From contig JAIVFI010000004.1 in assembly GCA_025558095.1 (NCBI GenBank), positions 558,001 to 622,000 on the forward strand: a stretch of 64,000 nt of DNA, written 5' to 3'. This document shows, one piece after another, positions 3,542 through 48,044 of the stretch (within the stretch, counting starts at the first letter, position 1; every line of letters begins with the position of its first letter). The notes beneath the pieces were generated by a model. That model did not search any database. It was not told the DNA's origin and worked only from the letters and a program-made list of their open reading frames with translations. The translations under genes and the position numbers were made by a program. The stretch comes from Hyaloraphidium curvatum SAG 235-1 (Eukaryota; Fungi; Monoblepharomycota).

Positions 3542-4842
3542 ATGGTCGCCGGACTCATCGCCGGGGCCGCCAAGGCCGTCCTGGGCGGAGGCGGCGGCGG
3601 AGGTCCGAGCGCCGCCCCGACGTCGGTCAGCACGGCCACGCTCATCCACAACTACGTGTACGACGTCGGCAAGGCGACGGTCGAGGCCCGCGTGGCCAAC
3701 GAGGGCGCCGTGACCGGCCAGCAGGACGCCGCACTCTCCAACCGCGAGGCCGCCGACGTCGCGGGCTCGCAGCACGGCTCCGTGATAGGCATGCAGTCGC
3801 AGGCCGCTGACTTCTCGCAGGCGGCCCCGTTCGAGGCCTCGCTGGCCACCACGGCTATCAACATGGCCCACGGCAGCCACGCCATCGCAGATGCGCAGGC
3901 TAAGGCGCAGCAGGCCCTGCACGAGGCTCCACGGTCGGAGGCCAGCCGCGCTCCTGCTCGGGCGGACGGCGTTCTCGGAGCTGCCGACGAGGAAGCCATC
4001 GCGGGCCTGTTCACCGTGGTCAAAGACCTCAGCAACCGGGTGGGTGCTGGGGTGCTTGCACGGTGTCACCTGCGGTGCCGACCGCGCTGATGCAATACCC
4101 GGCCGACAGGTCACGGCCCTTGAGGGCGAGCTCCGGACCAAGGATGGCCTGGTCTGTGCTACTGCACCTACGGCACTGTGCCGCCCTTGATGATAACCTC
4201 CTGTCTTAGATAATGACGTTAATGGAGGAACTCTCTAAACTCAAAGAACAGAACCAGAAAGTCCAGCAGATGGAAGCACATTTTGGACAGGTGTTCACGC
4301 TTGACAGTTCAGGTGAGCAGTGGCCCAGGGCTTGATTCCTTTCACCGCTTTGATTTACTCATAGTTCTCATACAGGCCAGCTCAAGGTCCGCGCCGATTT
4401 GGTCAAGGCACACCAAATTGAAGTCGATTTGGTCAAGGCACACCGAATTGAAGTCGAACGGGTCAACGCACACCTGGTCAAGGCACGCCAAATTGAGGTC
4501 GATTCGGTCGAGGCACACCGAATTAAAGTCGATGAGGTCAAGGCGCACCGCCTCCAGCTGGGCAACTTCACACTTCGGCCTTCCCGCGTCAATCCAACTG
4601 AGCACCTGGAAATCTCCCAGGTCCGCCCTGCTATGGGCGACTTCACCGAGTACCCGATCGCCCTTTTCGGCGGGCTCCTTCCTGGTATGCCGAAGCTCAT
4701 GCTATACCTCAACGGCCGTATTGCTGGTTCAGACAGCACCCTGAGCTTCTTTGAGGTGGCGGCAAACGGGAACACTCGCGTTGTCCTCAAGCCCCGCGAG
4801 AAAACACCGCCCAACCACGAGGTCGGGGGCGTGACGTTTTAG
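3542..4842 (+). CDS. Array gene A, divergent copy A1 (expanded pentapeptide repeats, short coiled coil)
   Basis: Exons 3542-4039, 4110-4151, 4210-4312, 4376-4842 splice in frame with GT-AG introns at the same positions as A2-A5; ends NHEVGGVTF*. Confidence 0.85.
4381..4560 (+). repeat. Coding 15/30-bp tandem repeat (ttggtcaaggcacaccaaattgaagtcgat-like)
   Basis: Translates as VKAHQ IEVDL VKAHR IEVER VNAHL VKARQ IEVDS VEAHR IKVDE VKAHR. Confidence 0.9.
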
Positions 4843-6442
4843 ATGTCGTCTTCCAACCAGCAGCAGCAGCCGAGGACGTGAGCGCCGCGGACTCGCGCAC
4901 GCGTACGACCTGACCCCCCGAGTCCCGCAGGCGCTGCGAGCCAAGGCCGGCGAGACGAGCACCGGTAGCGGGGGTGTGGGCGGGATGGTTGGCCGGCGGA
5001 GGATTGGCCGCACATCCAGGGACTTAAGGACGTTGTTTGGGGGGAACCGGTGGGTGGGGCGTGTCGAAGGATGGCTGGCGCCGCATCCAGGGCTGGGTTT
5101 GTTGAGGGTCGCGAATAAGAGCTCGTCTCGCGAGGTTGAGGCGTTGTTGCGAGTTGACCGCGGCCGGCGGGGACCGGCGTCACCAACGGATCGACTCTCC
5201 GGCCTCCCACTGCTGCCCGGGGCGCTCGTCCGTATTTTTCCGGGCGCCCCGCACCGCGCCCATGGGGCTGCCGGGCACGCCGGGCCGAATGCCGCGTCCA
5301 GCGTCGGCGGCGGGCGGACCGGGCGCGGACTGTTTGCGCGGTGTTCCTCTCGGCCTGTGCGCCCGCAGGGACGCTGCGGTCACGCTGGAAGGCCAATTCT
5401 GCGGCCCGTTTGGCTCGGAGCGTGGACGGGCGGGGGAGACCACGGGCGCCTGCGGATGGTTCCCCTTCTCGGCCGGCGCGGATTGGAAACTGCAACTGAG
5501 GACCGGGCATCCCCCTGCCGGCGCTGCGGGGACCCGCTGCTCGAAAGCAGCCTCCCGTGGTCCTCCGTGCGCCGCGCTCCCTTGCTCGGCGGGTCTTCTG
5601 TTTCCGTGTTCTCTTGCTTCGAAGGCCGAACTCCTCGACAGGCAGAGCTAGGACGAGCTGACCCGCACTCATCCTATCGGACTCAAGGTGGACACGGACT
5701 CGCGCTGGAGCACGCCTGGGCTTTCTTGATGGTGCTGCGGGACAGCAGGAGATGATGTTCTCGTGGTTTTCGCGGCCAGCAAGGATCCCGGCCTGGCTTC
5801 GTCGAGCGCGACCTGGTCCCACCCCTCAACCAGCGCTCCTTCGGCTCGTTGCCGCCGCCCACATTGTTCTGCACTGCGGACGGAGTATTTCATGTGCCGT
5901 ACTTCGAAGGAACGCTATCCTGTGCTGAGTTGGCCGGCTTGCTTGAACTGGCGAGCCGCCGTACCTTCTGGATCACATGCCCGTCCCCTTGTCGGCGCCG
6001 CAACGGGATGGGGACGTACGAGAGTGTTATTGCCCTCGGGCATCGACTCGGACTTGGTTTGCTCGCTTTCCTTGGCGTTGGACGACTCGCGCCGTTTCAA
6101 GGATTGACCTTCGCGTCCCGGCTCACCCCCGAATCGCTCCGGAGCCCCAGCGGATCCCTGTTCTGCTGCTCCGGAACGTATTCGTCGGTGTTTCGATGGC
6201 AGTTTGTTATGCCGGTGCCGGCGGCCGCGTCGGAAACGCGGGTGTGCCGCGTGAGCGACGAACCATTTTGCAGTTCCCGACGGACCGATGCACGATCTAG
6301 CCCTAGGGATGCCGGCCAGCACCGTGGACGGATGACGATGGCGGATGCGGCCTCAGCCTTGCCCTCGTGCGGGGTGTGCAGAAGCTCGATGGGCGGAACC
6401 GGTGGCGGGGTCGGGTCCCGGCCCAGGTTCGGCCCCGGCCGG

Positions 6443-6585
6443 CTGCACCACATTCGAACCGAACCGCCGGACGGGCCCCGTCCGCCCGCCCGACGCCGCA
6501 CCGCCGAGGTGAAGTGCAACGCGGCTCGCGTCGCGCCCGCTGACCGCCCCGCCGCAGCCCCGCACGCACCGCACGCCATGCTCGT
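6443..6585 (+). pseudogene. Empty array unit: promoter-deleted leader plus B-type start (ATGCTCGT) fused directly to spacer
   Basis: About 200 bp of upstream spacer is missing at ~6443. ATG at 6578 is followed by ctcgt|aaggacgttg, which re-enters the 3' spacer. Confidence 0.75.
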
Positions 6586-8338
6586 AAGGACGTTGTTTGG
6601 GGGGAACCGGTGGGCGGGGCGTGTCGAAGGATGGCTGGCGCCGCATCCAGGGCTGGGTTTGTTGAGGGTCGCGAATAAGAGCTCGTCTCGCGAGGTTGAG
6701 GCGTTGTTGCGAGTTGCCCGCGGCCGGCGGGGACCGGCGTCACCCACCGGATCGACTCTCCGGCCTCCCACTGCTGCCCGGGGCGCTCGTCCGTATTTTT
6801 CCGGGCGCCCCGCACCGCGCCCATGGGGCTGCCGGGCACGCCGGGCCGAATGCCGCGTCCAGCGTCGGCGGCGGGCGGACCGGGCGCGGACTGTTTGCGC
6901 GGTGTTCCTCTCGGCCTGTGCGCCCGCAGGGACGCTGCGGTCACGCTGGAAGGCCAATTCTGCGGCCCGTTTGGCTCGGAGCGTGGACGGGCGGGGGAGA
7001 CCACGGGCGCCTGCGGATGGTTCCCCTTCTCGGCCGGCGCGGATTGGAAACTGCAACTGAGGACCGGGCATCCCCCTGCCGGCGCTGCGGGGACCCGCTG
7101 CTCGAAAGCAGCCTCCCGTGGTCCTCCGTGCGCCGCGCTCCCTTGCTCGGCGGGTCTTCTGTTTCCGTGTTCTCTTGCTTCGAAGGCCGAACTCCTCGAC
7201 AGGCAGAGCTAGGACGAGCTGACCCGCACTCATCCTATCGGACTCAAGGTGGACACGGACTCGCGCTGGAGCACGCCTGGGCTTTCTTGATGGTGCTGCG
7301 GGACAGCAGGAGATGATGTTCTCGTGGTTTTCGCGGCCAGCAAGGATCCCGGCCTGGCTTCGTCGAGCGCGACCTGGTCCCACCCCTCAACCAGCGCTCC
7401 TTCGGCTCGTTGCCGCCGCCCACATTGTTCTGCACTGCGGACGGAGTATTTCATGTGCCGTACTTCGAAGGAACGCTATCCTGTGCTGAGTTGGCCGGCT
7501 TGCTTGAACTGGCGAGCCGCCGTACCTTCTGGATCACATGCCCGTCCCCTTGTCGGCGCCGCAACGGGATGGGGACGTACGAGAGTGTTATTGCCCTCGG
7601 GCATCGACTCGGACTTGGTTTGCTCGCTTTCCTTGGCGTTGGACGACTCGCGCCGTTTCAAGGATTGACCTTCGCGTCCCGGCTCACCCCCGAATCGCTC
7701 CGGAGCCCCAGCGGATCCCTGTTCTGCTGCTCCGGAACGTATTCGTCGGTGTTTCGATGGCAGTTTGTTATGCCGGTGCCGGCGGCCGCGTCGGAAACGC
7801 GGGTGTGCCGCGTGCGCGACGAACCATTTTGCAGTTCCCGACGGACCGATGCACGATCTAGCCCTAGGGATGCCGGCCAGCACCGTGGACGGATGACGAT
7901 GGCGGATGCGGCCTCAGCCTTGCCCTCGTGCGGGGTGTGCAGAAGCTCGATGGGCGGAACCGGTGGCGGGGTCGGGTCCCGGCCCAGGTTCGGCCCCGGC
8001 CGGCCGTGCAGCGAATCCGCCGCCGACGACGCGCCGGCCGGCCGGCCGCAGCCTTTGGCGCCTCTGTGGACGGGGATCGAGAGAGATTCGGCGTGATGCG
8101 AGGGGATGTTGGGCCGATCATGTCTCCCCGCCACACAAACACACGCGTTTTCCCGCCGGGCCCGGACATGCGGGGGCCGAGCGGCGCAAGCCGCTCTTGC
8201 GTCTGCCACCACATTCGAACCGAACCGCCGGACGCGCCCCGTCCGCCCGCCCGACGCCGCACCGCCGAGGTGAAGTGCAACGCGGCTCCCGTCGCGCCCG
8301 CTGACCCACCCGCCGCAGCCCCGCACACGTCGCACGCC

Positions 8339-9093
8339 ATGCTCGTCGGAGGAAGCTTTGCTCCCGCTACCGCTCCCGTCGATGGCTCGTCCGCCCCGAC
8401 GCCGGCCCAGCCGACGACGATAAACGTCAACGTCACCTTCCAGGAAGTAGGCACTGGCGTGGACAGCCGCCTGGCAAACGACGGCACGCCGGCCGACCAC
8501 CAGGGGGCAGCCGTGCACGACAGCACACGCTCGCAGAGCGCCGACGCCTCGCAGGCCGCCTCGACCGAGGTCACGCAGGCCACCACGGCGACCAACACCG
8601 CTCAAGGCGGCCGCGCGACCGTCTCCGTCCAGGTTACGGTCCATCTGGGTCAGCCGCAGACCCAGCTGCAGAGCGAGCTGCCGGACCAGTGCCAAGCTCC
8701 GCCGTCGGAGGCTTGCGACGCTGCTTTAAGGGCCGAAGCCGTCCTCTCGGCGGACGATTACGATGCGCTCGTCGATATGATGTACGGCTTGGGCCAGCTC
8801 AAGGACAGGGTGAGTCGTGGTGCTCGAGTGGCGGTGGCATTGGACGGGATGCTGATTTCATTTGCTGCGATAGGTCGACGACGTTGCCGCCGAGAATCTG
8901 GCCAAGCACGCGGAAGCCGCCGCCCGGGTGAGATCCTCGCTCAGAGCCGTGGGCCGCCGTATTCTGACTTCTCGGCCCGCAGATCGAGGATCTTGCTCGT
9001 GAGCTCGAGGCCAAGAAGCTTCGCCTTGCCGAACTCGAGTTCGGGATACAGGACCACGTGGCCCGGTGCGCGTGCGGCGGCGTGAACTTTTAG
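8339..9093 (+). CDS. Array paralog B, short copy B1
   Basis: Exons 8339-8809, 8874-8927, 8983-9093 in frame. Homologous to A (RLANDG, SQAAS, TATNTAxGGxAT, QAPPSE, RAxxVLSAxD, DR| intron); ends ARCACGGVNF*. Confidence 0.75.
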
Positions 9094-11025
9094 GTCTCAT
9101 CTTACAAGCAGCAGCAGCAGCAGCCGAGGACGTGAGCGCCGCGGACTTGCGCACGCGTACGAACTGACCCCCCGAGTCCCGCAGGCGCTGCGAGCCAAGG
9201 CCGGCGAGACGAGCACCGGTAGCGGGGGTGTGGGCGGGATGGTTTGCCGGCGGAGGATTGGCCGAACATCCAGGGACTTAAGGACGTTGTTTGGGGGGAA
9301 CCGGTGGGCGGGGCGTGTCGAAGGATGGCTGGCGCCGCATCCAGGGCTGGGTTTGTTGAGGGTCGCGAATAAGAGCTCGTCTCGCGAGGTTGAGGCGTTG
9401 TTGCGAGTTGCCCGCGGCCGGCGGGGACCGGCGTCACCCACCGGATCGACTCTCCGGCCTCCCACTGCTGCCCGGGGCGCTCGTCCGTATTTTTCCGGGC
9501 GCCCCGCACCGCGCCCATGGGGCTGCCGGGCACGCCGGGCCGAATGCCGCGTCCAGCGTCGGCGGCGGGCGGACCGGGCGCGGACTGTTTGCGCGGTGTT
9601 CCTCTCGGCCTGTGCGCCCGCAGGGACGCTGCGGTCACGCTGGAAGGCCAATTCTGCGGCCCGTTTGGCTCGGAGCGTGGACGGGCGGGGGAGACCACGG
9701 GCGCCTGCGGATGGTTCCCCTTCTCGGCCGGCGCGGATTGGAAACTGCAACTGAGGACCGGGCATCCCCCTGCCGGCGTTGCGGGGACCCGCTGCTCGAA
9801 AGCAGCCTCCCGTGGTCCTCCGTGCGCCGCGCTCCCTTGCTCGGCGGGTCTTCTGTTTCCGTGTTCTCTTGCTTCGAAGGCCGAACTCCTCGACAGGCAG
9901 AGCTAGGACGAGCTGACCCGCACTCATCCTATCGGACTCAAGGTGGACACGGACTCGCGCTGGAGCACGCCTGGGCTTTCTTGATGGTGCTGCGGGACAG
10001 CAGGAGATGATGTTCTCGTGGTTTTCGCGGCCAGCAAGGATCCCGGCCTGGCTTCGTCGAGCGCGACCTGGTCCCACCCCTCAACCAGCGCTCCTTCGGC
10101 TCGTTGCCGCCGCCCACATTGTTCTGCACTGCGGACGGAGTATTTCATGTGCCGTACTTCGAAGGAACGCTATCCTGTGCTGAGTTGGCCGGCTTGCTTG
10201 AACTGGCGAGCCGCCGTACCTTCTGGATCACATGCCCGTCCCCTTGTCGGCGCCGCAACGGGATGGGGACGTACGAGAGTGTTATTGCCCTCGGGCATCG
10301 ACTCGGACTTGGTTTGCTCGCTTTCCTTGGCGTTGGACGACTCGCGCCGTTTCAAGGATTGACCTTCGCGTCCCGGCTCACCCCCGAATCGCTCCGGAGC
10401 CCCAGCGGATCCCTGTTCTGCTGCTCCGGAACGTATTCGTCGGTGTTTCGATGGCAGTTTGTTATGCCGGTGCCGGCGGCCGCGTCGGAAACGCGGGTGT
10501 GCCGCGTGCGCGACGAACCATTTTGCAGTTCCCGACGGACCGATGCACGATCTAGCCCTAGGGATGCCGGCCAGCACCGTGGACGGATGACGATGGCGGA
10601 TGCGGCCTCAGCCTTGCCCTCGTGCGGGGTGTGCAGAAGCTCGATGGGCGGAACCGGTGGCGGGGTCGGGTCCCGGCCCAGGTTCGGCCCCGGCCGGCCG
10701 TGCAGCGAATCCGCCGCCGACGACGCGCCGGCCGGCCGGCCGCAGCCTTTGGCGCCTCTGTGGACGGGGATCGAGAGAGATTCGGCGTGATGCGAGGGGA
10801 TGTTGGGCCGATCATGTCTCCCCGCCACACAAACACACGCGTTTTCCCGCCGGGCCCGGACATGCGGGGGCCGAGCGGCTTGCTTGCGTCTGCCACCACA
10901 TTCGAACCGAACCGCCGGACGCGCCCCGTCCGCCCGCCCGACGCCGCACCGCCGAGGTGAAGTGCAACGCGGCTCGCGTCGCGCCCGCTGACCCACCCGC
11001 CGCAGCCCCGCACGCACCGCACGCC

Positions 11026-12334
11026 ATGGTCGCCGGACTCATCGCCGGGGCCGCCAAGGCCGTCCTGGGCGGAGGCGGCGGCGGAGGCCCGAGCGCCGCC
11101 CCGACGTCGGTCACCACGGCCACGCACATCCACAACTACGTGTACGACGTCGGCAAGTCGACGGCCGAGGTCCGCGTGGCCAACGAGGGCGCCGTGACCG
11201 GCCAGCAGGACGCCGCCGTCTCCAACCGCCAGGCCGCCGACGTCTCGGGCTCGCAGCACGGCTCCGTCTCGGGCTCGCAGTCGCAGGCCGCTGACTTCTC
11301 GCAGGCGGCCTCGGTCGAGGCGTCGCTCGCCAACACGGCCACCAACACGGCCCACGGCGGCCACGCCACCGCAGACGCGCAGGCCAAGGCGCAGCAGAGC
11401 CAGCACCAGGGCCAGCACCAGGTTCAGCAGCAGAGCCAGCGTCAGGCGCAGGCCCAGCACCAGGCCCCGCCGTCCGAGGGCGGCCGCGCCCCTGCTCGGG
11501 CGGACGGTGTGCTCAGCGCCGCCGACGAGGAAGCCATCGCCGGCCTGTTCCCCGCCGTGCAGGGCGTCGGCGACCGGGTGAGTGCGGCGACTCCTTGGCG
11601 CCTTGCCGGCCACGCTGATGCAGTGCTCCGCGCGACAGCTCACCGCCGTCGAGGGCGAGCTCCGGACCAAGGACGCCGTGGTCGGTGCTGCTGCTGCTAC
11701 CGGCGTGTGCGGGCATGCTGATGTCTTCCCGCGGCAGATCGCCACGCTCAGCGAGACGGTTGCGGCCGTCGAGCGCCGCCTCGCCGAACTTGAGGCGCAG
11801 AAGACGGCCGACGCCGCGCTCCAGGCGGCTCTGGAAGCAGGCGCCGCCCAAGCCGACTCCAGGATCGGCGAGCTCTTCGCCAAGCTCCAGCGGATGGAGG
11901 CTCTTCTCGCTCAGGTGTTTGTGACGGACGGGCCCGGTGAGCAGCGCCCCGACTCCCCTGCGACTGCGACTGATGGAGGCATCCCGCTTCGTGCAGGCCG
12001 CCGCGTCAAAGCCATCCTTGTCGACGTGGTCAAGGCCGCCCGCGTCGAGCTCGGGAACTTCGCCATTCAGCCCTCCCGGGTCAACCCCACCGAGCACCTC
12101 GAGATCACGCAGGTCCGTCCCGCCACTGGCAACCACACCGAGTTCCCCATCGCCCTGTTCGGCGGGCTCCTCGGCGGCATGCCCAGGTTCAGGGTCTACC
12201 TCAAGGGCCGCGTCGCGGGTTCGGCCGACACGCTGACCTTTTACGAGGTCGGCGCCGACGGCGAAACCCGCGTCGTAGTCAAGACCCCCGCCCAGACCCC
12301 GCCCAATCACGAGGTCGGGGGCGTGACCTTCTAG
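11026..12334 (+). CDS. Array gene A copy A2, 376-aa orphan fibre/spike-like protein
   Basis: Introns 11578-11638, 11681-11737, 11937-11996, all GT..CTGAT..CAG. Indels between copies fall inside these introns; strong GC3 codon bias. Confidence 0.9.
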
Positions 12335-14074
12335 ATCTCATCTTTCAAGCAGCAGCAGCAGCCGAGGACGTGAGCGCCGCGGACTTGCGCACGCGTACGA
12401 ACTGAAGCCCCGAGTCCCGCAGGCGCTGCGAGCCAAGGCCGGCGAGACGAGCACCGGTAGCGGGGGCGTGGGCGGGATGGTTGGCCGGCGGAGGATTGGC
12501 CGAACATCCAGGGACTTAAGGACGTTGTTTGGGGGGAACCGGTGGGCGGGGCGTGTCGAAGGATGGCTGGCGCCGCATCCAGGGCTGGGTTTGTTGAGGG
12601 TCGCGAATAAGAGCTCGTCTCGCGAGGTTGAGGCGTTGTTGCGAGTTGCCCGCGGCCGGCGGGGACCGGCGTCACCCACCGGATCGACTCTCCGGCCTCC
12701 CACTGCTGCCCGGGGCGCTCGTCCGTATTTTTCCGGGCGCCCCGCACCGCGCCCATGGGGCTGCCGGGCACGCCGGGCCGAATGCCGCGTCCAGCGTCGG
12801 CGGCGGGCGGACCGGGCGCGGACTGTTTGCGCGGTGTTCCTCTCGGCCTGTGCGCCCGCAGGGACGCTGCGGTCACGCTGGAAGGCCAATTCTGCGGCCC
12901 GTTTGGCTCGGAGCGTGGACGGGCGGGGGAGACCACGGGCGCCTGCGGATGGTTCCCCTTCTCGGCCGGCGCGGATTGGAAACTGCAACTGAGGACCGGG
13001 CATCCCCCTGCCGGCGCTGCGGGGACCCGCTGCTCGAAAGCAGCCTCCCGTGGTCCTCCGTGCGCCGCGCTCCCTTGCTCGGCGGGTCTTCTGTTTCCGT
13101 GTTCTCTTGCTTCGAAGGCCGAACTCCTCGACAGGCAGAGCTAGGACGAGCTGACCCGCACTCATCCTATCGGACTCAAGGTGGACACGGACTCGCGCTG
13201 GAGCACGCCTGGGCTTTCTTGATGGTGCTGCGGGACAGCAGGAGATGATGTTCTCGTGGTTTTCGCGGCCAGCAAGGATCCCGGCCTGGCTTCGTCGAGC
13301 GCGACCTGGTCCCACCCCTCAACCAGCGCTCCTTCGGCTCGTTGCCGCCGCCCACATTGTTCTGCACTGCGGACGGAGTATTTCATGTGCCGTACTTCGA
13401 AGGAACGCTATCCTGTGCTGAGTTGGCCGGCTTGCTTGAACTGGCGAGCCGCCGTACCTTCTGGATCACATGCCCGTCCCCTTGTCGGTGCCGCAACGGG
13501 ATGGGGACGTACGAGAGTGTTATTGCCCTCGGGCATCGACTCGGACTTGGTTTGCTCGCTTTCCTTGGCGTTGGACGACTCGCACCGTTTCAAGGATTGA
13601 CCTTCGCGTCCCGGCTCACCCCCGAATCGCTCCGGAGCCCCAGCGGATCCCTGTTCTGCTGCTCCGGAACGTATTCGTCGGTGTTTCGATGGCAGTTTGT
13701 TATGCCGGTGCCGGCGGCCGCGTCGGAAACGCGGGTGTGCCGCGTGCGCGACGAACCATTTTGCAGTTCCCGACGGACCGATGCACGATCTAGCCCTAGG
13801 GATGCCGGCCAGCACCGTGAACGGATGACGATGGCGGATGCGGCCTCAGCCTTGCCCTCGTGCGGGGTGTGCAGAAGCTCGATGGGCGGAACCGGTGGCG
13901 GGGTCGGGTCCCGGCCCAGGTTCGGCCCCGGCCGGCCGTGCAGCGAATCCGCCGCCGACGACGCGCCGGCCGGCCGGCCGCAGCCTTTGGCGCCTCTGTG
14001 GACGGGGATCGAGAGAGATTCGGCGTGATGCGAGGGGATGTTGGGCCGATCATGTCTCCCCGCCACACAAACAC

Positions 14075-14088
14075 ACGCGTTTTCCCGC
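14075..14088 (+). promoter_or_regulatory. Adjacent MCB-like (ACGCGT) and E2F-like (TTTCCCGC) motifs ~190 bp upstream of the ATG, present in each intact unit
   Basis: Sequence acACGCGTTTTCCCGCcg; matches to known consensus only, and could be chance in GC-rich DNA. Confidence 0.3.
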
Positions 14089-14201
14089 CGGGCCCGGACA
14101 TGCGGGGGCCGAGCGGCGCAAGCCGCTCTTGCGTCTGCCACCACATTCGAACCGAACCGCCGGACGCGCCCCGTCCGCCCGCCCGACGCCGCACCGCCGA
14201 G

Positions 14202-14250
14202 GTGAAGTGCAACGCGGCTCGCGTCGCGCCCGCTGACCGCCCCGCCGCAG
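14202..14250 (+). other. 5'-UTR intron of array genes (present in every unit; analogous intron ~3477-3531 before A1)
   Basis: gag|GTGAAG...GCTGAC...CCGCAG|, 20 nt before the ATG. A1 has gag|GTCGGT..CTGAC..CCCAG|gaacccagctATG. Confidence 0.65.
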
Positions 14251-14270
14251 CCCCGCACGCACCGCACGCC

Positions 14271-15579
14271 ATGGTCGCCGGACTCATCGCCGGGGCCGCC
14301 AAGGCCGTCCTGGGCGGAGGCGGCGGCGGAGGCCCGAGCGCCGCCCCGACGTCGGTCACCACGGCCACGCACATCCACAACTACGTGTACGACGTCGGCA
14401 AGTCGACGGCCGAGGTCCGCGTGGCCAACGAGGGCGCCGTGACCGGCCAGCAGGACGCCGCCGTCTCCAACCGCCAGGCCGCCGACGTCTCGGGCTCGCA
14501 GCACGGCTCCGTCTCGGGCTCGCAGTCGCAGGCCGCTGACTTCTCGCAGGCGGCCTCGGTCGAGGCGTCGCTCGCCAACACGGCCACCAACACGGCCCAC
14601 GGCGGCCACGCCACCGCAGACGCGCAGGCCAAGGCGCAGCAGAGCCAGCACCAGGGCCAGCACCAGGTTCAGCAGCAGAGCCAGCGTCAGGCGCAGGCCC
14701 AGCACCAGGCCCCGCCGTCCGAGGGCGGCCGCGCCCCTGCTCGGGCGGACGGTGTGCTCAGCGCCGCCGACGAGGAAGCCATCGCCGGCCTGTTCCCCGC
14801 CGTGCAGGGCGTCGGCGACCGGGTGAGTGCGGCGACTCCTTGGCGCCTTGCCGGCCACGCTGATGCAGTGCTCCGCGCGACAGGTCACCGCCGTCGAGGG
14901 CGAGCTCCGGACCAAGGACGCCGTGGTCGGTGCTGCTGCTGCTACCGGCGTGTGCGGGCATGCTGATGTCTTCCCGCGGCAGATCGCCACGCTCAGCGAG
15001 ACGGTTGCGGCCGTCGAGCGCCGCCTCGCCGAACTTGAGGCGCAGAAGACGGCCGACGCCGCGCTCCAGGCGGCTCTGGAAGCAGGCGCCGCCCAAGCCG
15101 ACTCCAGGATCGGCGAGCTCTTCGCCAAGCTCCAGCGGATGGAGGCTCTTCTCGCTCAGGTGTTTGTGACGGATGGGCCCGGTGAGCAGCGCCCCGACTC
15201 CCCTGCGACTGCGACTGATGGAGGCATCCCGCTTCGTGCAGGCCGCCGCGTCAAAGCCATCCTTGTCGACGTGGTCAAGGCCGCCCGCGTCGAGCTCGGG
15301 AACTTCGCCATTCAGCCCTCCCGGGTCAACCCCACCGAGCACCTCGAGATCACGCAGGTCCGTCCCGCCACTGGCAACCACACCGAGTTCCCCATCGCCC
15401 TGTTCGGCGGGCTCCTCGGCGGCATGCCCAGGTTCAGGGTCTACCTCAAGGGCCGCGTCGCGGGTTCGGCCGACACGCTGACCTTTTACGAGGTTGGCGC
15501 CGACGGCGAAACCCGCGTCGTAGTCAAGACCCCCGCCCAGACCCCGCCCAATCACGAGGTCGGGGGCGTGACCTTCTAG
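14271..15579 (+). CDS. Array gene A copy A3
   Basis: Near-identical to A2 with the same four exons. Confidence 0.9.
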
Positions 15580-17515: not shown

Positions 17516-18824
17516 ATGGTCGCCGGACTCATCGCCGGGGCCGCCAAGGCCGTCCTGGGCGGAGGCGGCGGCGGAGGCCCGAGCGCCGCCCCGACGTCGG
17601 TCACCACGGCCACGCACATCCACAACTACGTGTACGACGTCGGCAAGTCGACGGCCGAGGTCCGCGTGGCCAACGAGGGCGCCGTGACCGGCCAGCAGGA
17701 CGCCGCCGTCTCCAACCGCCAGGCCGCCGACGTCTCGGGCTCGCAGCACGGCTCCGTCTCGGGCTCGCAGTCGCAGGCCGCTGACTTCTCGCAGGCGGCC
17801 TCGGTCGAGGCGTCGCTCGCCAACACGGCCACCAACACGGCCCACGGCGGCCACGCCACCGCAGACGCGCAGGCCAAGGCGCAGCAGAGCCAGCACCAGG
17901 GCCAGCACCAGGTTCAGCAGCAGAGCCAGCGTCAGGCGCAGGCCCAGCACCAGGCCCCGCCGTCCGAGGGCGGCCGCGCCCCTGCTCGGGCGGACGGTGT
18001 GCTCAGCGCCGCCGACGAGGAAGCCATCGCCGGCCTGTTCCCCGCCGTGCAGGGCGTCGGCGACCGGGTGAGTGCGGCGACTCCTTGGCGCCTTGCCGGC
18101 CACGCTGATGCAGTGCTCCGCGCGACAGGTCACCGCCGTCGAGGGCGAGCTCCGGACCAAGGACGCCGTGGTCGGTGCTGCTGCTGCTACCGGCGTGTGC
18201 GGGCATGCTGATGTCTTCCCGCGGCAGATCGCCACGCTCAGCGAGACGGTTGCGGCCGTCGAGCGCCGCCTCGCCGAACTTGAGGCGCAGAAGACGGCCG
18301 ACGCCGCGCTCCAGGCGGCTCTGGAAGCAGGCGCCGCCCAAGCCGACTCCAGGATCGGCGAGCTCTTCGCCAAGCTCCAGCGGATGGAGGCTCTTCTCGC
18401 TCAGGTGTTTGTGACGGATGGGCCCGGTGAGCAGCGCCCCGACTCCCCTGCGACTGCGACTGATGGAGGCATCCCGCTTCGTGCAGGCCGCCGCGTCAAA
18501 GCCATCCTTGTCGACGTGGTCAAGGCCGCCCGCGTCGAGCTCGGGAACTTCGCCATTCAGCCCTCCCGGGTCAACCCCACCGAGCACCTCGAGATCACGC
18601 AGGTCCGTCCCGCCACTGGCAACCACACCGAGTTCCCCATCGCCCTGTTCGGCGGGCTCCTCGGCGGCATGCCCAGGTTCAGGGTCTACCTCAAGGGCCG
18701 CGTCGCGGGTTCGGCCGACACGCTGACCTTTTACGAGGTTGGCGCCGACGGCGAAACCCGCGTCGTAGTCAAGACCCCCGCCCAGACCCCGCCCAATCAC
18801 GAGGTCGGGGGCGTGACCTTCTAG
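17516..18824 (+). CDS. Array gene A copy A4
   Basis: Near-identical to A3. Confidence 0.9.
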
Positions 18825-20760: not shown

Positions 20761-22069
20761 ATGGTCGCCGGACTCATCGCCGGGGCCGCCAAGGCCGTCC
20801 TGGGCGGAGGCGGCGGCGGAGGCCCGAGCGCCGCCCCGACGTCGGTCACCACGGCCACGCACATCCACAACTACGTGTACGACGTCGGCAAGTCGACGGC
20901 CGAGGTCCGCGTGGCCAACGAGGGCGCCGTGACCGGCCAGCAGGACGCCGCCGTCTCCAACCGCCAGGCCGCCGACGTCTCGGGCTCGCAGCACGGCTCC
21001 GTCTCGGGCTCGCAGTCGCAGGCCGCTGACTTCTCGCAGGCGGCCTCGGTCGAGGCGTCGCTCGCCAACACGGCCACCAACACGGCCCACGGCGGCCACG
21101 CCACCGCAGACGCGCAGGCCAAGGCGCAGCAGAGCCAGCACCAGGGCCAGCACCAGGTTCAGCAGCAGAGCCAGCGTCAGGCGCAGGCCCAGCACCAGGC
21201 CCCGCCGTCCGAGGGCGGCCGCGCCCCTGCTCGGGCGGACGGTGTGCTCAGCGCCGCCGACGAGGAAGCCATCGCCGGCCTGTTCCCCGCCGTGCAGGGC
21301 GTCGGCGACCGGGTGAGTGCGGCGACTCCTTGGCGCCTTGCCGGCCACGCTGATGCAGTGCTCCGCGCGACAGGTCACCGCCGTCGAGGGCGAGCTCCGG
21401 ACCAAGGACGCCGTGGTCGGTGCTGCTGCTGCTACCGGCGTGTGCGGGCATGCTGATGTCTTCCCGCGGCAGATCGCCACGCTCAGCGAGACGGTTGCGG
21501 CCGTCGAGCGCCGCCTCGCCGAACTTGAGGCGCAGAAGACGGCCGACGCCGCGCTCCAGGCGGCTCTGGAAGCAGGCGCCGCCCAAGCCGACTCCAGGAT
21601 CGGCGAGCTCTTCGCCAAGCTCCAGCGGATGGAGGCTCTTCTCGCTCAGGTGTTTGTGACGGATGGGCCCGGTGAGCAGCGCCCCGACTCCCCTGCGACT
21701 GCGACTGATGGAGGCATCCCGCTTCGTGCAGGCCGCCGCGTCAAAGCCATCCTTGTCGACGTGGTCAAGGCCGCCCGCGTCGAGCTCGGGAACTTCGCCA
21801 TTCAGCCCTCCCGGGTCAACCCCACCGAGCACCTCGAGATCACGCAGGTCCGTCCCGCCACTGGCAACCACACCGAGTTCCCCATCGCCCTGTTCGGCGG
21901 GCTCCTCGGCGGCATGCCCAGGTTCAGGGTCTACCTCAAGGGCCGCGTCGCGGGTTCGGCCGACACGCTGACCTTTTACGAGGTTGGCGCCGACGGCGAA
22001 ACCCGCGTCGTAGTCAAGACCCCCGCCCAGACCCCGCCCAATCACGAGGTCGGGGGCGTGACCTTCTAG
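20761..22069 (+). CDS. Array gene A copy A5
   Basis: Near-identical to A3/A4. Confidence 0.9.
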
Positions 22070-24005
22070 ATCTCATCTTTCAAGCAGCAGCAGCAGCCGA
22101 GGACGTGAGCGCCGCGGACTTGCGCACGCATACGAACTGAAGCCCCGAGTCCCGCAGGCGCTGCGAGCCAAGGCCGGCGAGACGAGCACCGGTAGCGGGG
22201 GCGTGGGCGGGATGGTTGGCCGGCGGAGGATTGGCCGAACATCCAGGGACTTAAGGACGTTGTTTGGGGGGAACCGGTGGGCGGGGCGTGTCGAAGGATG
22301 GCTGGCGCCGCATCCAGGGCTGGGTTTGTTGAGGGTCGCGAATAAGAGCTCGTCTCGCGAGGTTGAGGCGTTGTTGCGAGTTGCCCGCGGCCGGCGGGGA
22401 CCGGCGTCACCCACCGGATCGACTCTCCGGCCTCTCACTGCTGCCCGGGGCGCTCGTCCGTATTTTTCCCGGCGCCCCGCACCGCGCCCATGGGGCTGCC
22501 GGGCACGCCGGGCCGAATGCCGCGTCCAGCGTCGGCGGCGGGCGGACCGGGCGCGGACTGTTTGCGCGGTGTTCCTCTCGGCCTGTGCGCCCGCAGGGAC
22601 GCTGCGGTCACGCTGGAAGGCCAATTCTGCGGCCCGTTTGGCTCGGAGCGTGGACGGGCGGGGGAGACCACGGGCGCCTGCGGATGGTTCCCCTTCTCGG
22701 CCGGCGCGGATTGGAAACTGCAACTGAGGACCGGGCATCCCCCTGCCGGCGCTGCGGGGACCCGCTGCTCGAAAGCAGCCTCCCGTGGTCCTCCGTGCGC
22801 CGCGCTCCCTTGCTCGGCGGGTCTTCTGTTTCCGTGTTCTCTTGCTTCGAAGGCCGAACTCCTCGACAGGCAGAGCTAGGACGAGCTGACCCGCACTCAT
22901 CCTATCGGACTCAAGGTGGACACGGACTCGCGCTGGAGCACGCCTGGGCTTTCTTGATGGTGCTGCGGGACAGCAGGAGATGATGTTCTCGTGGTTTTCG
23001 CGGCCAGCAAGGATCCCGGCCTGGCTTCGTCGAGCGCGACCTGGTCCCACCCCTCAACCAGCGCTCCTTCGGCTCGTTGCCGCCGCCCACATTGTTCTGC
23101 ACTGCGGACGGAGTATTTCATGTGCCGTACTTCGAAGGAACGCTATCCTGTGCTGAGTTGGCCGGCTTGCTTGAACTGGCGAGCCGCCGTACCTTCTGGA
23201 TCACATGCCCGTCCCCTTGTCGGCGCCGCAACGGGATGGGGACGTACGAGAGTGTTATTGCCCTCGGGCATCGACTCGGACTTGGTTTGCTCGCTTTCCT
23301 TGGCGTTGGACGACTCGCACCGTTTCAAGGATTGACCTTCGCGTCCCGGCTCACCCCCGAATCGCTCCGGAGCCCCAGCGGATCCCTGTTCTGCTGCTCC
23401 GGAACGTATTCGTCGGTGTTTCGATGGCAGTTTGTTATGCCGGTGCCGGCGGCCGCGTCGGAAACGCGGGTGTGCCGCGTGAGCGACGAACCATTTTGCA
23501 GTTCCCGACGGACCGATGCACGATCTAGCCCTAGGGATGCCGGCCAGCACCGTGAACGGATGACGATGGCGGATGCGGCCTCAGCCTTGCCCTCGTGCGG
23601 GGTGTGCAGAAGCTCGATGGGCGGAACCGGTGGCGGGGTCGGGTCCCGGCCCAGGTTCGGCCCCGGCCGGCCGTGCAGCGAATCCGCCGCCGACGACGCG
23701 CCGGCCGGCCGGCCGCAGCCTTTGGCGCCTCTGTGGACGGGGATCGAGAGAGATTCGGCGTGATGCGAGGGGATGTTGGGCCGATCATGTCTCCCCGCCA
23801 CACAAACACACGCGTTTTCCCGCCGGGCCCGGACATGCGGGGGCCGAGCGGCGCAAGCCGCTCTTGCGTCTGCCACCACATTCGAACCGAACCGCCGGAC
23901 GCGCCCCGTCCGCCCGCCCGACGCCGCACCGCCGAGGTGAAGTGCAACGCGGCTCGCGTCGCGCCCGCTGACCGCCCCGCCGCAGCCCCGCACGCACCGC
24001 ACGCC

Positions 24006-25292
24006 ATGGTCGCCGGACTCATCGCCGGGGCCGCCAAGGCCGTCCTGGGCGGAGGCGGCGGCGGAGGCCCGAGCGCCGCCCCGACGTCGGTCACCACGGC
24101 CACGCACATCCACAACTACGTGTACGACGTCGGCAAGTCGACGGCCGAGGTCCGCGTGGCCAACGAGGGCGCCGTGACCGGCCAGCAGGACGCCGCCGTC
24201 TCCAACCGCCAGGCCGCCGACGTCTCGGGCTCGCAGCACGGCTCCGTCTCGGGCTCGCAGTCGCAGGCCGCTGACTTCTCGCAGGCGGCCTCGGTCGAGG
24301 CGTCGCTCGCCAACACGGCCACCAACACGGCCCACGGCGGCCACGCCACCGCAGACGCGCAGGCCAAGGCGCAGCAGAGCCAGCACCAGGGCCAGCACCA
24401 GGTTCAGCAGCAGAGCCAGCGTCAGGCGCAGGCCCAGCACCAGGCCCCGCCGTCCGAGGGCGGCCGCGCCCCTGCTCGGGCGGACGGTGTGCTCAGCGCC
24501 GCCGACGAGGAAGCCATCGCCGGCCTGTTCCCCGCCGTGCAGGGCGTCGGCGACCGGGTGAGTGCGGCGACTCCTGGCGCCTTACCGGCCATGCTGATGC
24601 AGTGCTCCGCGCGACAGGTCACCGCCGTCGAGGGCGAGCTCCGGACCAAGGACGCCGTGGTCGGTGCTGCTGCTGCTACCGGCGTGTGCGGGCATGCTGA
24701 TGTCTTTCCCGCGGCAGATCGCCACGCTCAGCGAGACGCTTGCGGCCGTCGAGCGCCGCCTCGCCGAACTTGAGGCGCAGAAGACGGCCGACGCCGCGCT
24801 CCAGGCGGCTCTGGAAGCAGGCGCCGCCCAAGCCGACTCCAGGATCGGCGAGCTCTTCGCCACGCTCCAGCGGATGGAGGCTCTTCTCGCTCAGGTGTTT
24901 GTGACGGACGGGCCCGGTGAGCAGCGCCCCGACTCCCCTGCGACTGCGACTGATGGAAGCATCCCGCTTCGTGCAGGCCGCCGCGTCAAAGCCATCCTCT
25001 TCGACGTGGTCAAGGCCCTCCGCGTCGAGCTCAGGAACTTCGCCATTCAGCCCTCCCGGGTCAACCCCACCGAGCACCTCGAGATCTCGCAGGTCCGCAC
25101 CGCGTCGGGCAACGCCACCGAGTTCCCCATCGTCCTGTTCGGCGGGCTCCTCGGCGGCATGCCTAAGTTCAGGGTCTACCTCAAGGGCCGCGCACCTCGA
25201 GATCTCGCAGGTCCACACCGCGTCGGGCAACCCCACCGAGTTCCCCATCGCCCTGTTCGGCGGGCTCCTCGGCGGCATGCCTAAGTTCAGGG
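24006..25292 (+). pseudogene. Array gene A copy A6, C-terminally disrupted
   Basis: A 118-bp-period duplication (25075 vs 25193) frameshifts the head domain (stop at 25284). The native C-terminus and first part of the spacer are deleted. Confidence 0.8.
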
Positions 25293-27072
25293 CGGGATGG
25301 GCTGCGCATCCAGGGACTTAAGGACGTTCCTTGGGGGGAACCGGCGGGCGGGGCGTGTCGAAGGATGGCTGGCGCCGCATCCAGGGCTGGGTTCGTTGAG
25401 GGTCGCGAATAAGAGCTCGTCTCGCGAGGTTGAGGCGTTGTTGCGAGTTGCCCGCGGCCGGCGGGGACCGGCGTCACCCACCGGATCGACTCTCCGGCCT
25501 CTCACTGCTGCCCGGGGCGCTCGTCCGTATTTTTCCCGGCGCCCCGCACCGCGCCCATGGGGCTGCCGGGCACGCCGGGCCGAATGCCGCGTCCAGCGTC
25601 GGCGGCGGGCGGACCGGGCGCGGACTGTTTGCGCGGTGTTCCTCTCGGCCTGTGCGCCCGCAGGGACGCTGCGGTCACGCTGGAAGGCCAATTCTGCGGC
25701 CCGTTTGGCTCGGAGCGTGGACGGGCGGGGGAGACCACGGGCGCCTGCGGATGGTTCCCCTTCTCGGCCGGCGCGGATTGGAAACTGCAACTGAGGACCG
25801 GGCATCCCCCTGCCGGCGCTGCGGGGACCCGCTGCTCGAAAGCAGCCTCCCGTGGTCCTCCGTGCGCCGCGCTCCCTTGCTCGGCGGGTCTTCTGTTTCC
25901 GTGTTCTCTTGCTTCGAAGGCCGAACTCCTCGACAGGCAGAGCTAGGACGAGCTGACCCGCACTCATCCTATCGGACTCAAGGTGGACACGGACTCGCGC
26001 TGGAGCACGCCTGGGCTTTCTTGATGGTGCTGCGGGACAGCAGGAGATGATGTTCTCGTGGTTTTCGCGGCCAGCAAGGATCCCGGCCTGGCTTCGTCGA
26101 GCGCGACCTGGTCCCACCCCTCAACCAGCGCTCCTTCGGCTCGTTGCCGCCGCCCACATTGTTCTGCACTGCGGACGGAGTATTTCATGTGCCGTACTTC
26201 GAAGGAACGCTATCCTGTGCTGAGTTGGCCGGCTTGCTTGAACTGGCGAGCCGCCGTACCTTCTGGATCACATGCCCGTCCCCTTGTCGGCGCCGCAACG
26301 GGATGGGGACGTACGAGAGTGTTATTGCCCTCGGGCATCGACTCGGACTTGGTTTGCTCGCTTTCCTTGGCGTTGGACGACTCGCGCCGTTTCAAGGATT
26401 GACCTTCGCGTCCCGGCTCACCCCCGAATCGCTCCGGAGCCCCAGCGGATCCCTGTTCTGCTGCTCCGGAACGTATTCGTCGGTGTTTCGATGGCAGTTT
26501 GTTATGCCGGCGCCGGCGGCCGCGTCGGAAACGCGGGTGTGCCGCGTGAGCGACGAACCATTTTGCAGTTCCCGACGGACCGATGCACGATCTAGCCCTA
26601 GGGATGCCGGCCAGCACCGTGGACGGATGACGATGGCGGATGCGGCCTCAGCCTTGCCCTCGTGCGGGGTGTGCAGAAGCTTGATGGGCGGAACCGGTGG
26701 CGGGGTCGGGTCCCGGCCCAGGTTCGGCCCCGGCCGGCCGTGCAGCGAATCCGCCGCCGACGACGCGCCGGCCGGCCGGCCGCAGCCTTTGGCGCCTCTG
26801 TGGACGGGGATCGAGAGAGATTCGGCGTGATGCGAGGGGATGTTGGGCCGATCATGTCTCCCCGCCACACAAACACACGCGTTTTCCCGCCGGGCCCGGA
26901 CATGCGGGGGCCGAGCGGCGCAAGCCGCTCTTGCGTCTGCCACCACATTCGAACCGAACCGCCGGACGCGCCCCGTCCGCCCGCCCGACGCCGCACCGCC
27001 GAGGTGAAGTGCAACGCGGCTCCCGTCGCGCCCGCTGACCCACCCGCCGCAGCCCCGCACACGTCGCACGCC

Positions 27073-28466
27073 ATGCTCGTCGGAGGAAGCTTTGCTCCCG
27101 CTACCGCTCCCGTCGATGGCTCGTCCGCCCCGACGCCGGCCCAGCCGACGACGATAAACGTCAACGTCACCTTCCAGGAAGTAGGCACTGGCGTGGACAG
27201 CCGCCTGGCAAACGACGGCACGCCGACCGACCACCAGGGGGCAGCTGTGGACGACCGCACACGCTTGCAGGTCGCCGACGCCTTTCCGACCGCCTCGACC
27301 GAGGTCACGCAGGCCACCACGGCGACCAACACCGCCCTCGGCGGCCGCGCGACCGTGTCCGTCCAGGTTACGGTCCATCTGGGTCCGCCGCAGGCCCAGC
27401 TGCAGAGCGAGCTGCCGGACCAGTGCCAAGCTCCGCCGTCGGAGGCTCGCGGTGCTGCTTTAAGGGCCGACGCCGTCCTCTCGGCGGACGATTACGATGC
27501 GCTCGTCGATATGATGTACGGCTTGGGCCAGCTCAAGGACAGGGTGAGTCGTGGTGCTCGAGTGGCGGTGGCATTGGACGGGATGCTGATTTCATTTGCT
27601 GCGATAGGTCGACGACGTTGCCGCCGAGAATCTGGCCAAGCACGCGGAAGCCGCCGCCCGGGTGAGATCCTCGCTCAGAGCCGTGGGCCGCCGTATTCTG
27701 ACTTTCTCGGCCCGCAGATCGAGAATCTTGCTCGTGAGCTCGAGGCCAAGAAGCTTCGCCTTGCCGAACTCGAGTCCGAGATGCAGGACCAATTGGCCCG
27801 GTGCGGCGGCTTCCCCATCCAGCCGTCGCAGGTTGACGACAAGTTCGAGCATCTGGAGGCCAATAAGCGCGCCACATTGCGCCGTGATCTGGATCGACAG
27901 CTTGCTCTCTTCGGCCTTCATGTTGTCGGAGACATGGTCGTCGTCGACGACCGTTCAATTCCTCGTGCCAACAACCTGGCCCCTCCAGTGGCCCCGGCCG
28001 TGATTCTGCCTGACTTGTTTGAGCACCTGACGGCCTTGCTGCCCATCCTCCGCGACCAACCTGTACAGCCCTCGCATTTCGATCTGAGGGAAGCTGAAGC
28101 TAGGCGTGATGCCTCGCCCACTCGTTTTGGCGACGTCTCCCTGGATGAGGGGCTGGGCTCATTTGAGCACGCGAAAGCGAAGTGGGACCCATGTCTTGCA
28201 CTCGCGAGATTAGCAATCCTACTCACAAAGCCTTTTCTGGCTTTTCCAACAGCATCGCTACCAAGCCTACTTCTAGCGTACCGACCTGGCTCCTCAAGCG
28301 CAAGTGGCGTGTTGATGACCCCTTGGCCCCTCTCTATGACAGCTTCGCCAAAGCCCTTGCACCTGCACCGGCCGACAGCCCGGAGACTGATGCTCTTAGT
28401 GTCACTTGCATGGGCAACAGCGGGGCACCTGAAGACCACGACCCCGATTCGTTCAGCGATGCCTAA
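27073..28466 (+). CDS. Array paralog B, long copy B2
   Basis: Introns 27544-27607, 27662-27717 and probably 28182-28252 (then stop at 28466; unspliced stop at 28497). Contains FPIQPSQVDDKFEHLE..QLALFG, which aligns to A's FAIQPSRVNPTEHLE..PIALFG. Confidence 0.7.
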
Positions 28467-33825: not shown

Positions 33826-34220
33826 GAAGGTGGGGATCAGGGCGAGCGCTGCGCCCCGTCAAAGCCCAGGCCCCATTTCGTCGCAACTGATTACCCGCAC
33901 ATGCAGCGCGAATCTAATACGCGGTTTCAAAGTTTGCCTTGGCTCGTGACCTTCCGCTGTACCAGGGGACGATCGATCTTTGGTCATTCATCGCTGGATG
34001 CTGGGGACGCGTGGCCGCCTTGAGACGATTCCGTCGGCATCCCCTGAAATAACAATACGTCGTACATACAGATCAAATGCAAAATGCGGTAGAAAGCGGT
34101 GAATCTATCTATTCGCAGCTGGCATCCAGATGAGCGCCGTCGGGAGCGGGTGGACGAGGCCCGCGGACAAGTCAAGCTTTGTCGCCGCCCCGAATTCACG
34201 CTTGTGTCCCGGCCAAGACC

Positions 34221-47700: not shown

Positions 47701-48044
47701 TGGTCCGCACCCGCTTCTGGCTCTGCGACAAGAAGAGCCGGGCGCAGACGCCCGACACGGTGTTCTGGGAGCAGGTGCTCAACTGCACGTGGGTCGGGGC
47801 CGAGGAGGCGGAGGACGGCGAGCCTGCGGGGCGCTACCTGTGCGAAGCCGGAGCCGGAGGCGCCCACGTGCTCGACGGGCCTCAGATGGCCTTCGATGCA
47901 AGTTATTGGCCCAACCTCGAGAACAAGCCCAAACGAGCGGGCGCCACCGCGCTCTTCGGATGGCCGCGGCTTACCGTGCACGACCCCACTGTTGGCCGTC
48001 AGTGCGTCGCCTACAAAAGCGAGAGCAGCTTCCCGATTGGGTGA
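44786..48044 (+). CDS. Large secreted cysteine-rich protein
   Basis: Signal peptide MRAHRSPVLLALALVAIAATADG and dibasic RR; repeated C-x5-7-C-x3-CC-x4-5-C modules. Intron 45197-45272 joins in frame to ORF 45372-48044. Confidence 0.85.

Follow-up and report, generated by a model that had tools for sequence, protein, structure and literature searches.

A tandem array of near-identical units in Hyaloraphidium curvatum encodes an orphan protein family with a predicted coiled-coil stalk

A coiled-coil stalk combined with beta-repeats and a terminal head is the layout of the attachment fibres of viruses and phages. VxGxxxxx has been described as the repeat motif of the triple-stranded beta-helix of T4 gp5 (PMC4576200). 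Here, a stretch of 64,000 nucleotides of Hyaloraphidium curvatum SAG 235-1 (contig JAIVFI010000004.1, contig 4 of a 31.9-Mb assembly, positions 558,001 to 622,000 of the forward strand, hereafter the window) was analyzed, which carries at positions 3542 to 28466 a tandem gene array that an initial annotation had read as encoding an orphan protein family of trimeric spike- or fibre-like architecture. Hyaloraphidium is a poorly studied, non-flagellated planktonic relative of chytrids. As a general picture, it appears reasonably probable that the array proteins are expressed, lineage-specific and elongated coiled-coil homo-oligomers, probably trimers, which might serve as an abundant structural or tethering fibre. 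The count of six A-type and two B-type coding cassettes given by the initial annotation was reproduced: a search with the A-type start motif located A-type ATGs at 3542, 11026, 14271, 17516, 20761 and 24006, and the B-type ATGs lie at 8339 and 27073. Analyses of full-length proteins were run on the deposited P0001, P0002 and P0007, and all others on single exons. The members of the array, together with the sole other member of the family within the genome, are as follows:

3542..4842, plus strand: A1, intact, divergent A-type gene; deposited protein P0002, 369 aa
5183..6743, plus strand: gene-less array unit, a spacer that has lost its coding cassette, as seen from BLAST to the full unit
8339..9093, plus strand: B1, truncated B-type cassette, a headless chimera
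11026..12334, plus strand: A2, intact; deposited protein P0001, 376 aa; spliced transcript contig
12335..14270, plus strand: example of the spacer (3' flank, intergenic stretch and 5' leader), repeated before every cassette
14271..15579, plus strand: A3, intact; exon structure as in A2, offset by +3245; protein identical to those of A4 and A5
17516..18824, plus strand: A4, intact; protein identical to that of A3
20761..22069, plus strand: A5, intact; protein identical to that of A3
24006..25321, plus strand: A6, broken A-type copy
27073..28466, plus strand: B2, intact B-type gene; deposited protein P0007, 400 aa
L001 2276-3298 (contig 38, ~26275-27297), minus strand: contig-38 paralogue

The self-association of the array protein was analyzed with a three-copy ESMFold2 model of P0001 residues 165-376, in which the chain number was fixed at three by us. 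The model score was 0.74 (0.73-0.75 in three runs) as compared to 0.01 for the best of three controls, the partner pLDDT (predicted local distance difference test) was 71-72, and at least 85% of the contacts agreed between runs. Contacts were observed at 167, 170/171, 174, 177/178 and onwards to 258, i.e., at every a and d position, parallel and in register over ~13 heptads, and they continued through 267-290 to 321, alternating at 301, 303, 305 and 307. We propose that the stalk is a parallel, in-register coiled coil of residues ~167-258 with a length of ~14 nm, which is most likely three-stranded. Moreover, the sequences R184-L-T-A-V-E189 and R212-L-A-E-L-E217 fit the pattern Arg(g)-h(a)-x-x-h(d)-Glu(e) in the register of the model, and A1, B2 and the contig-38 copy each retain one such R-hxxhE motif. 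The two motifs share their g-a-x-x-d-e placement with those of the trimers of coronin-1, ccbeta and engineered cortexillin-1 (PMC3653964), which differ from the array protein in being short model coiled coils, unrelated in sequence and function, with a motif that is not fully trimer-specific. In an AlphaFold2 monomer model of P0001, built on a small family alignment, the mean pLDDT was 48 and only the helix 165-261 was modelled with confidence, the means of ten-residue blocks between residues 171 and 250 being 74-87. Thus, the trimer proposed by the initial annotation is backed by the predicted self-association of the stalk as a parallel coiled coil and by two R-hxxhE motifs, whereas the number three was imposed; because the number of chains was fixed in the model, the trimer is favoured and not established.

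The modular layout that had been described for the A protein was recovered, with corrections. P0001 starts with a 14-residue hydrophobic peptide of small residues followed by Gly7, and the long heptad helix, a Q/H-rich stretch (in A2-A6, not in A1) and a modest octad periodicity were found as well. The start MV.G.IAGA is kept in A1 and in the contig-38 copy, not in B, and the N-terminal peptide shows a small-xxx-small pattern at G4, G8, A12 and G16. A convincing transmembrane helix was absent, the top 19-residue Kyte-Doolittle mean being 1.3 at the N-terminus, and no signal peptide was evident by eye, a weak one being possible. The 8-residue periodicity in residues ~45-126 is significant, if modest (lag 8 z=3.5, p=0.001), and three to four octads fit VxGxxxxx (AVTG.., DVSG.., SVSG..) before the repeats decay; in the monomer model the octad region had a pLDDT of 24-37. 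The 'pentapeptide' repeats of the initial annotation turned out to be a decapeptide repeat of the type VKAHxIEVDx with alternating hydrophobic residues (lag 10 z=8.1), which forms the stretch from stalk to head in A1 and is expanded in A1 only. At the place of the beta-rich head, a C-terminal block of ~107 residues was predicted to be all-beta at low confidence: modelled alone with AlphaFold2, the head showed seven short strands at a pLDDT of 44, and both AlphaFold2 models were judged unfit for fold searches.

Regarding the function of these parts, we propose that the N-terminal 160 residues form a flexible low-complexity Ala/Gly/Gln/Ser arm with weak octad periodicity, whose short hydrophobic Gly-rich peptide could mediate docking to a membrane, hydrophobic surface or partner, and that the conserved, Cys-free beta domains (~107 residues) cluster at the C-terminal end, where they would be functionally constrained and probably bind a ligand or partner. 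The nonsynonymous to synonymous divergence ratio (dN/dS) of the head was 0.20 at a synonymous divergence (dS) of 0.95 between A1 and A2 and 0.27-0.47 between the contig-38 copy and A1 or A2, as compared to 0.56-0.71 for exon 1; the head is under purifying selection and is the most constrained part of the protein. A different role would be that of a condensate- or amyloid-prone low-complexity protein, e.g., for stress or storage, with the function residing in the Gly7, Q/H-rich and Ala/Ser/Gln-rich N-terminal half and the coiled coil only multimerizing it. The ~160 N-terminal residues are indeed predicted to be disordered, the composition is rich in Ala (18%), Gly (11%) and Gln (8%), and the small-xxx-small pattern of the N-terminus would be in line with it; yet the best conserved and most constrained part is the C-terminal beta domain and not the low-complexity arm (exon 1), A1 lacks the Q/H stretch, and Pfam gave no match to LEA-type or other stress families, which makes this role very unlikely.

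Compared with reovirus sigma1, adenovirus fibre and phage tail fibres or spikes, the array protein is alike in having an N-terminal anchoring peptide, a stalk that is predicted to be parallel and homo-oligomeric, beta-type repeats (in A1 only) and a C-terminal domain. It is unlike them in that the array gene is cellular and intron-bearing, has host codon composition and no sequence relation to them, and lies near no virion or tail genes; the likeness is one of module order, i.e., of layout only. The genes look fully cellular because of their host-like G+C content at third codon positions (GC3), their three spliceosomal introns and their ordinary cellular neighbours. A phage or viral fibre identity was not supported by sequence either: no significant match was found in PHROGs, the best 'tail' matches there (E 0.005-0.09) being on the low-complexity or coiled-coil part of P0002 only with none for the head, and the array proteins gave no Pfam match above cut-offs. 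A true trimeric spike or attachment fibre, built like these viral proteins and possibly domesticated from a virus, was considered as the reading of the initial annotation. Such a protein would consist of an N-terminal anchor peptide, a triple beta-helix of octads, the coiled coil, a shaft of beta-repeats and a receptor-binding knob, and the module order fits, as do the octads with their lag-8 periodicity, the alternating hydrophobic residues of the A1 decapeptide, the two trimer motifs in register and the lack of Cys and Trp in the A proteins. The three-copy model also scored well above its controls, with contacts extending into neck and head, but its support for three chains comes from a fixed chain number; likewise, only three to four octads fit, in a region of low pLDDT. 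Furthermore, no phage or viral sequence relation was found in PHROGs, Pfam, 1.84 billion protein representatives or viral contigs, codon composition and introns are host-like, and the neighbours (ankyrin/MYND, ionotropic glutamate receptor (iGluR)-like channel) are ordinary cellular genes. We therefore regard a true spike as unlikely.

Other described systems share single traits with the array protein. The beta-helix of T4 gp5/VgrG resembles it in a run of three to four octads that have V as second and G or N as fourth residue, and in the significant, though weak, 8-residue periodicity, whereas the array repeats are far fewer, less regular, Ala/Gln/Ser-rich and N-terminal instead of C-terminal, and the array protein lacks lysozyme, OB-fold and gp27-like parts. 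As in collectin- and tetranectin-type proteins, a parallel coiled-coil neck might present several C-terminal domains of ~100 residues, judging from layout only; unlike in collectins and C1q, no C-type lectin, C1q or collagen Pfam match, no cysteines and no evident signal peptide were found, and Gly7 is a homopolymer and not Gly-X-Y. Pentapeptide-repeat proteins, which form a quadrilateral beta-helix, are matched by the 5/10-residue periodicity of A1 with its alternating hydrophobics, whereas the A1 unit is the VKAHxIEVDx decapeptide and not A(D/N)LxX, and the repeat and head piece of A1 had no match to the Pfam pentapeptide families at E up to 1. In contrast to class I viral fusion proteins, the array protein lacks a hydrophobic segment at its C-terminal end, which is formed by a beta domain, and its Kyte-Doolittle maximum is at the N-terminus. 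At the level of sequence, no defining feature of any fibre family appears to be present. A bolder variant, which we rate as quite unlikely, would be a trimeric fibre made by an early-diverging fungus, in which an N-terminal peptide of Gly-zipper type acts on membranes and is combined with a short triple beta-helix, the coiled-coil stalk and a binding knob. Such a fibre would represent a convergent or domesticated cellular analogue of viral attachment fibres, with homogenised promoter/terminator frames carrying exchangeable cassettes (A1, A2-type, B). The 'needle system' suggested by the initial annotation found no backing: neither a transmembrane helix nor a signal peptide was evident, and when the array flanks were compared in six frames with the 26 kb surrounding the contig-38 paralogue, only short matches due to composition were obtained and no conserved neighbours, and thus no conserved partner genes beside that paralogue.

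The orphan status claimed for the family was confirmed, as no relative outside this genome was found in protein, profile, contig or PDB searches. When 5.8 billion proteins were searched through a word index for A exons 2-4, the last long B2 exon and P0001 residues 1-190, only P0001, P0002 and P0007 were returned, which are deposited as hypothetical proteins of Hyaloraphidium curvatum. The profile search of the head that had been suggested was run with HMMER, exhaustively over the 1.84 billion protein representatives, and gave, apart from P0002, four strongly repetitive proteins in which 29, 10, 3 and 5 stretches matched; from their sequences, these four were read as chance, so that no credible relative was obtained. 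Scans of viral and metagenome contigs as well as feature searches in the ESM Atlas with the whole protein and with the head alone yielded no significant relative, the PDB sequence search no significant match, and a search for contigs encoding P0001 nothing at all. A match to a known unrelated eukaryotic family, which the initial annotation had named as refuting its reading, was not found in the Pfam, PDB and protein searches. The family thus appears to be restricted to Hyaloraphidium curvatum (Monoblepharidomycetes). The contig-38 paralogue, which was not returned among deposited proteins in the search with P0001 residues 1-190 and may be unannotated, has the same layout (MVLGMIAGA.. start, Q-rich octads, coiled coil and a head ending in GGVTF), with 55% identity in the head. 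Separately, residues 278-356 of P0001 in the head showed a weak, non-significant likeness to antibody heavy-chain variable domains (best E 0.034); all matches covered the same region and belong to one redundant family, so that this might at most be a hint of a beta-sandwich.

Transcription and splicing, as predicted by the initial annotation, were confirmed with contigs from a public run, in which 58% of the words of one array unit were present. An A2-type contig (word depth ~190; mapped to 8300-14299) skips 11578-11638, 11681-11737 and 11937-11996, all GT..AG, the borders being adjusted for the reported ambiguity. This corresponds to A2 exons at 11026-11577, 11639-11680, 11738-11936 and 11997-12334, which sum to the 376 codons of P0001, and to introns of 61, 57 and 60 nt. 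A 1722-nt B2 contig begins within the shared leader, 450 nt or more upstream, carries B2-specific letters, continues into B2-specific sequence and skips two GT..AG introns, in B1 coordinates 8810-8873 and 8928-8982. The joints of the transcript contigs agree with the deposited models P0001, P0002 and P0007. In addition, the duplication junction of A6 is present in a transcript contig (joint 12212>12128, with A6-type letters between both sides). The spliced joints show that the run contains cDNA and that the A-type and B2 genes are transcribed and processed, with three introns removed in A2-type contigs and at least two in B2. Regarding the 'eight spliced paralogs' of the initial annotation, there are eight cassettes with splicing of the A2-type and of B2, but A6 is frameshifted and B1 is headless.

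A repeat search placed eight spacer anchors at 5183, 6744, 9438, 12676, 15921, 19166, 22411 and 25478, with intervals of 1561, 2694, 3238, 3245, 3245, 3245 and 3067 bp between consecutive anchors. The period of 3245 bp given previously is therefore exact for the middle units (A3-A5), whereas the other intervals range over 1561-3238 bp; the near identity of the spacers held, the eight copies of the spacer block being 99-100% identical to one another. The array thus consists of eight spacer-framed units of ~3.2 kb and the divergent upstream copy A1. In a BLAST comparison of every unit with unit 4, units 3-6 were 99.4-100% identical over the full length, and the A3-A5 units were 99.9-100% identical across 3245 bp, non-coding spacer included. 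The similarity of units 2 and 8 to the A-type units is limited to the first 1607 nt, except that unit 2 also has the final 363 nt in common with them; unit 7 has a rearranged 3' end, and unit 1 (5183-6743) matches spacer positions 1-1261 and 1457-1602 as well as the final 159 nt of a full unit. A classification of the spacer as a dispersed repeat or transposon was ruled out, as every genomic copy sits inside the array and none elsewhere in the genome, and coding composition was absent from the spacer in every frame examined. In total, six genes are intact (A1, A2-A5 and B2), two are broken (A6 and B1) and one unit is empty. It might be argued, in view of the identity among A3-A5, that the count of identical units stems from misassembly, with the repeat over-expanded or collapsed. 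Rare unit-specific differences (three coding ones in A2, three over the unit in A5, and the 3238 spacing of unit 3), structurally distinct units (A6, B1 and the empty unit) interleaved with the others, and the recurrence of the A6 duplication junction and of B2-specific letters in independent transcript contigs speak against it, and we consider an artefact extremely unlikely.

The single genes differ in age and state. A1 (approximate exons 3542-4040, 4111-4152, 4208-4315 and 4377-4842) has a decapeptide repeat that is expanded at ~4400-4549 as a 75-nt tandem repeat, and an upstream region of its own, in which no homology to the spacer is seen before 3539. Both A1 and B2 are intact paralogues of greater age and divergence. 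B2 has exons at 27073-27543, 27608-27661, 27718 to ~28180 and ~28252-28466, and its protein contains a short coiled coil, only the first third of the head motif and then a unique C-terminus. The A2-A5 proteins are one residue apart (V185L, A2 compared to A3-A5), and the coding differences amount to three, all in A2. A6 is frameshifted by a 118-bp tandem duplication in the head (25070-25292) and the last third of its head is deleted. B1, probably a decaying copy, consists of the 5' part of B fused to the final 18 nt of an A-type coding sequence and the A 3' flank, with A homology resuming at 9075. A6, B1 and the empty unit are products of decay. Module lengths, described earlier as differing between the paralogues, do vary between A1, the A2-type, B and the contig-38 copy, but not among A2-A5.

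Since A2-A5 encode the same protein save V185L, the core of the array, four essentially identical copies, points to dosage amplification and not to diversification; thus, the amplification claimed by the initial annotation held for its near-identical units, whereas 'diversifying' did not apply to A2-A5. We propose that a recent amplification by unequal crossing-over gave rise to the tandem array of ~3.2-kb units, by which the dose of the fibre protein would have been raised, and that ongoing unequal crossing-over and gene conversion spread through the homologous flanks and halt at cassettes whose divergence prevents pairing. Between A and B cassettes, the flank identity is 98.5-99% and extends to 12 nt beyond the ATG (borders 8350/27084); in B1 it resumes 18 nt before the stop (9075). 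The cassettes themselves have only 42% of residues in common in exon 1, at a dS of 0.72, so that diverged A and B coding sequences lie within one promoter and terminator frame. Overall, the identity of the non-coding flanks is 98.5-100%. The 3' flank of A1 is 99% identical to the array from the first base after the stop, and the divergence of A1 is mosaic, with a dS of 0.17 in exon 1 as compared to 0.95 in the head. This homogenisation of the flanks up to the cassette borders is the pattern that would be expected of homology-limited gene conversion, and the array would represent a tidy case of concerted evolution that halts exactly at the borders of diverged coding cassettes.

A neutral origin, in which a very recent segmental amplification took place in a decaying orphan locus, the identity reflects youth and gene conversion and not selection for dose, and the protein may be dispensable, would also account for the 99.9-100% identity of the units, which extends to the non-coding spacer. 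Decay has already left three units broken or empty, dN/dS between B1 and B2 is 1.1 in exon 1, and the family is absent from every other organism searched. On the other hand, the purifying selection on the head that is seen when A1, A2 and the contig-38 copy are compared as old paralogues (dN/dS 0.20-0.47), the spliced A-type transcript contig of high word depth and the intact frame kept in four copies speak against it, and we assign this origin a low probability. If an abundant fibre is indeed encoded, the family would mark a lineage-specific structure in Hyaloraphidium and would illustrate cleanly how dosage amplification can fix a young orphan family. The outcome is a well-supported orphan family with a plausible shape, moderate in comparison with the exceptional system that had been proposed.

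Several points weigh against an expressed, abundant and probably trimeric fibre. Coiled coils pack at any chain number offered, and the three-copy model does not separate dimer, trimer and tetramer. The calibration of its score, made on microbial proteins, in which the mark was reached by 21 of 30 proteins solved as pairs of one chain and by none of 23 solved as single chains, used pairs, and for eukaryotes or three copies its counts are only a rough guide. Most occurrences of the R-hxxhE motif are in parallel coiled coils of three strands, and some dimers carry it as well (PMC3653964), and the core of the stalk includes K195, D223 and A234/A237. In the AlphaFold2 monomer, the N-terminal 118 residues and the head had a pLDDT below 50, and the 'beta-rich head' is a low-confidence assignment derived from the pLDDT-44 model and a sequence pattern. 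The transcript contigs stem from one public run that was guessed to be RNA, though the spliced joints argue for RNA; their depth gives no ranking of expression, and expression is seen at the level of transcript contigs. Finally, the copy number of the units is the count of one assembly, and the decay of three of the nine units fits relaxed as well as dosage selection.

Besides the genes, the spacer is transcribed at 9438-10508 (with an equivalent in each unit, e.g., 12676-13746), as seen from a 1101-nt contig with a word depth of ~197, which has sequencing-adapter letters at the 9438 end and no coding composition in any frame. This transcript may be a non-coding RNA in its own right or belong to a 1.6-kb leader of the gene that follows. 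An Rfam scan of the window was empty or gave chance matches only. Since the B2 contig starts at least 450 nt upstream of cassette-specific sequence, the leader (13748-14270, repeated before each cassette) would carry ten upstream ATGs, three of which are in frame and open into the coding sequence. An N-terminal extension from these three was rejected: the composition there is non-coding (GC3 of 0.78 in the in-frame leader as compared to 0.90-0.94 in exons), and the MV.G.IAGA start kept in A1 and the contig-38 copy is fixed there because further upstream there is either a stop or no ATG. The second and third A-type introns (11681-11737 and 11937-11996 in A2, likewise in its equivalents) are in frame and stop-free, and the open reading frame 11582-12334 spans both; their retention would therefore add 19 and 20 residues and not break the protein.

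The window, with a G+C content of 60-71%, contains further genes downstream of the array, all on the plus strand. A 929-codon open frame at 45255-48041 has strong coding composition (GC3 0.88) and no Pfam match. Ankyrin-repeat proteins are encoded at 34134-35630 and 59592-60533, the first of which also has a C-terminal MYND zinc finger, and an open frame at 51731-53236 matches Pfam Lig_chan (E 6e-11), which points to an iGluR-like gene in a fungus.

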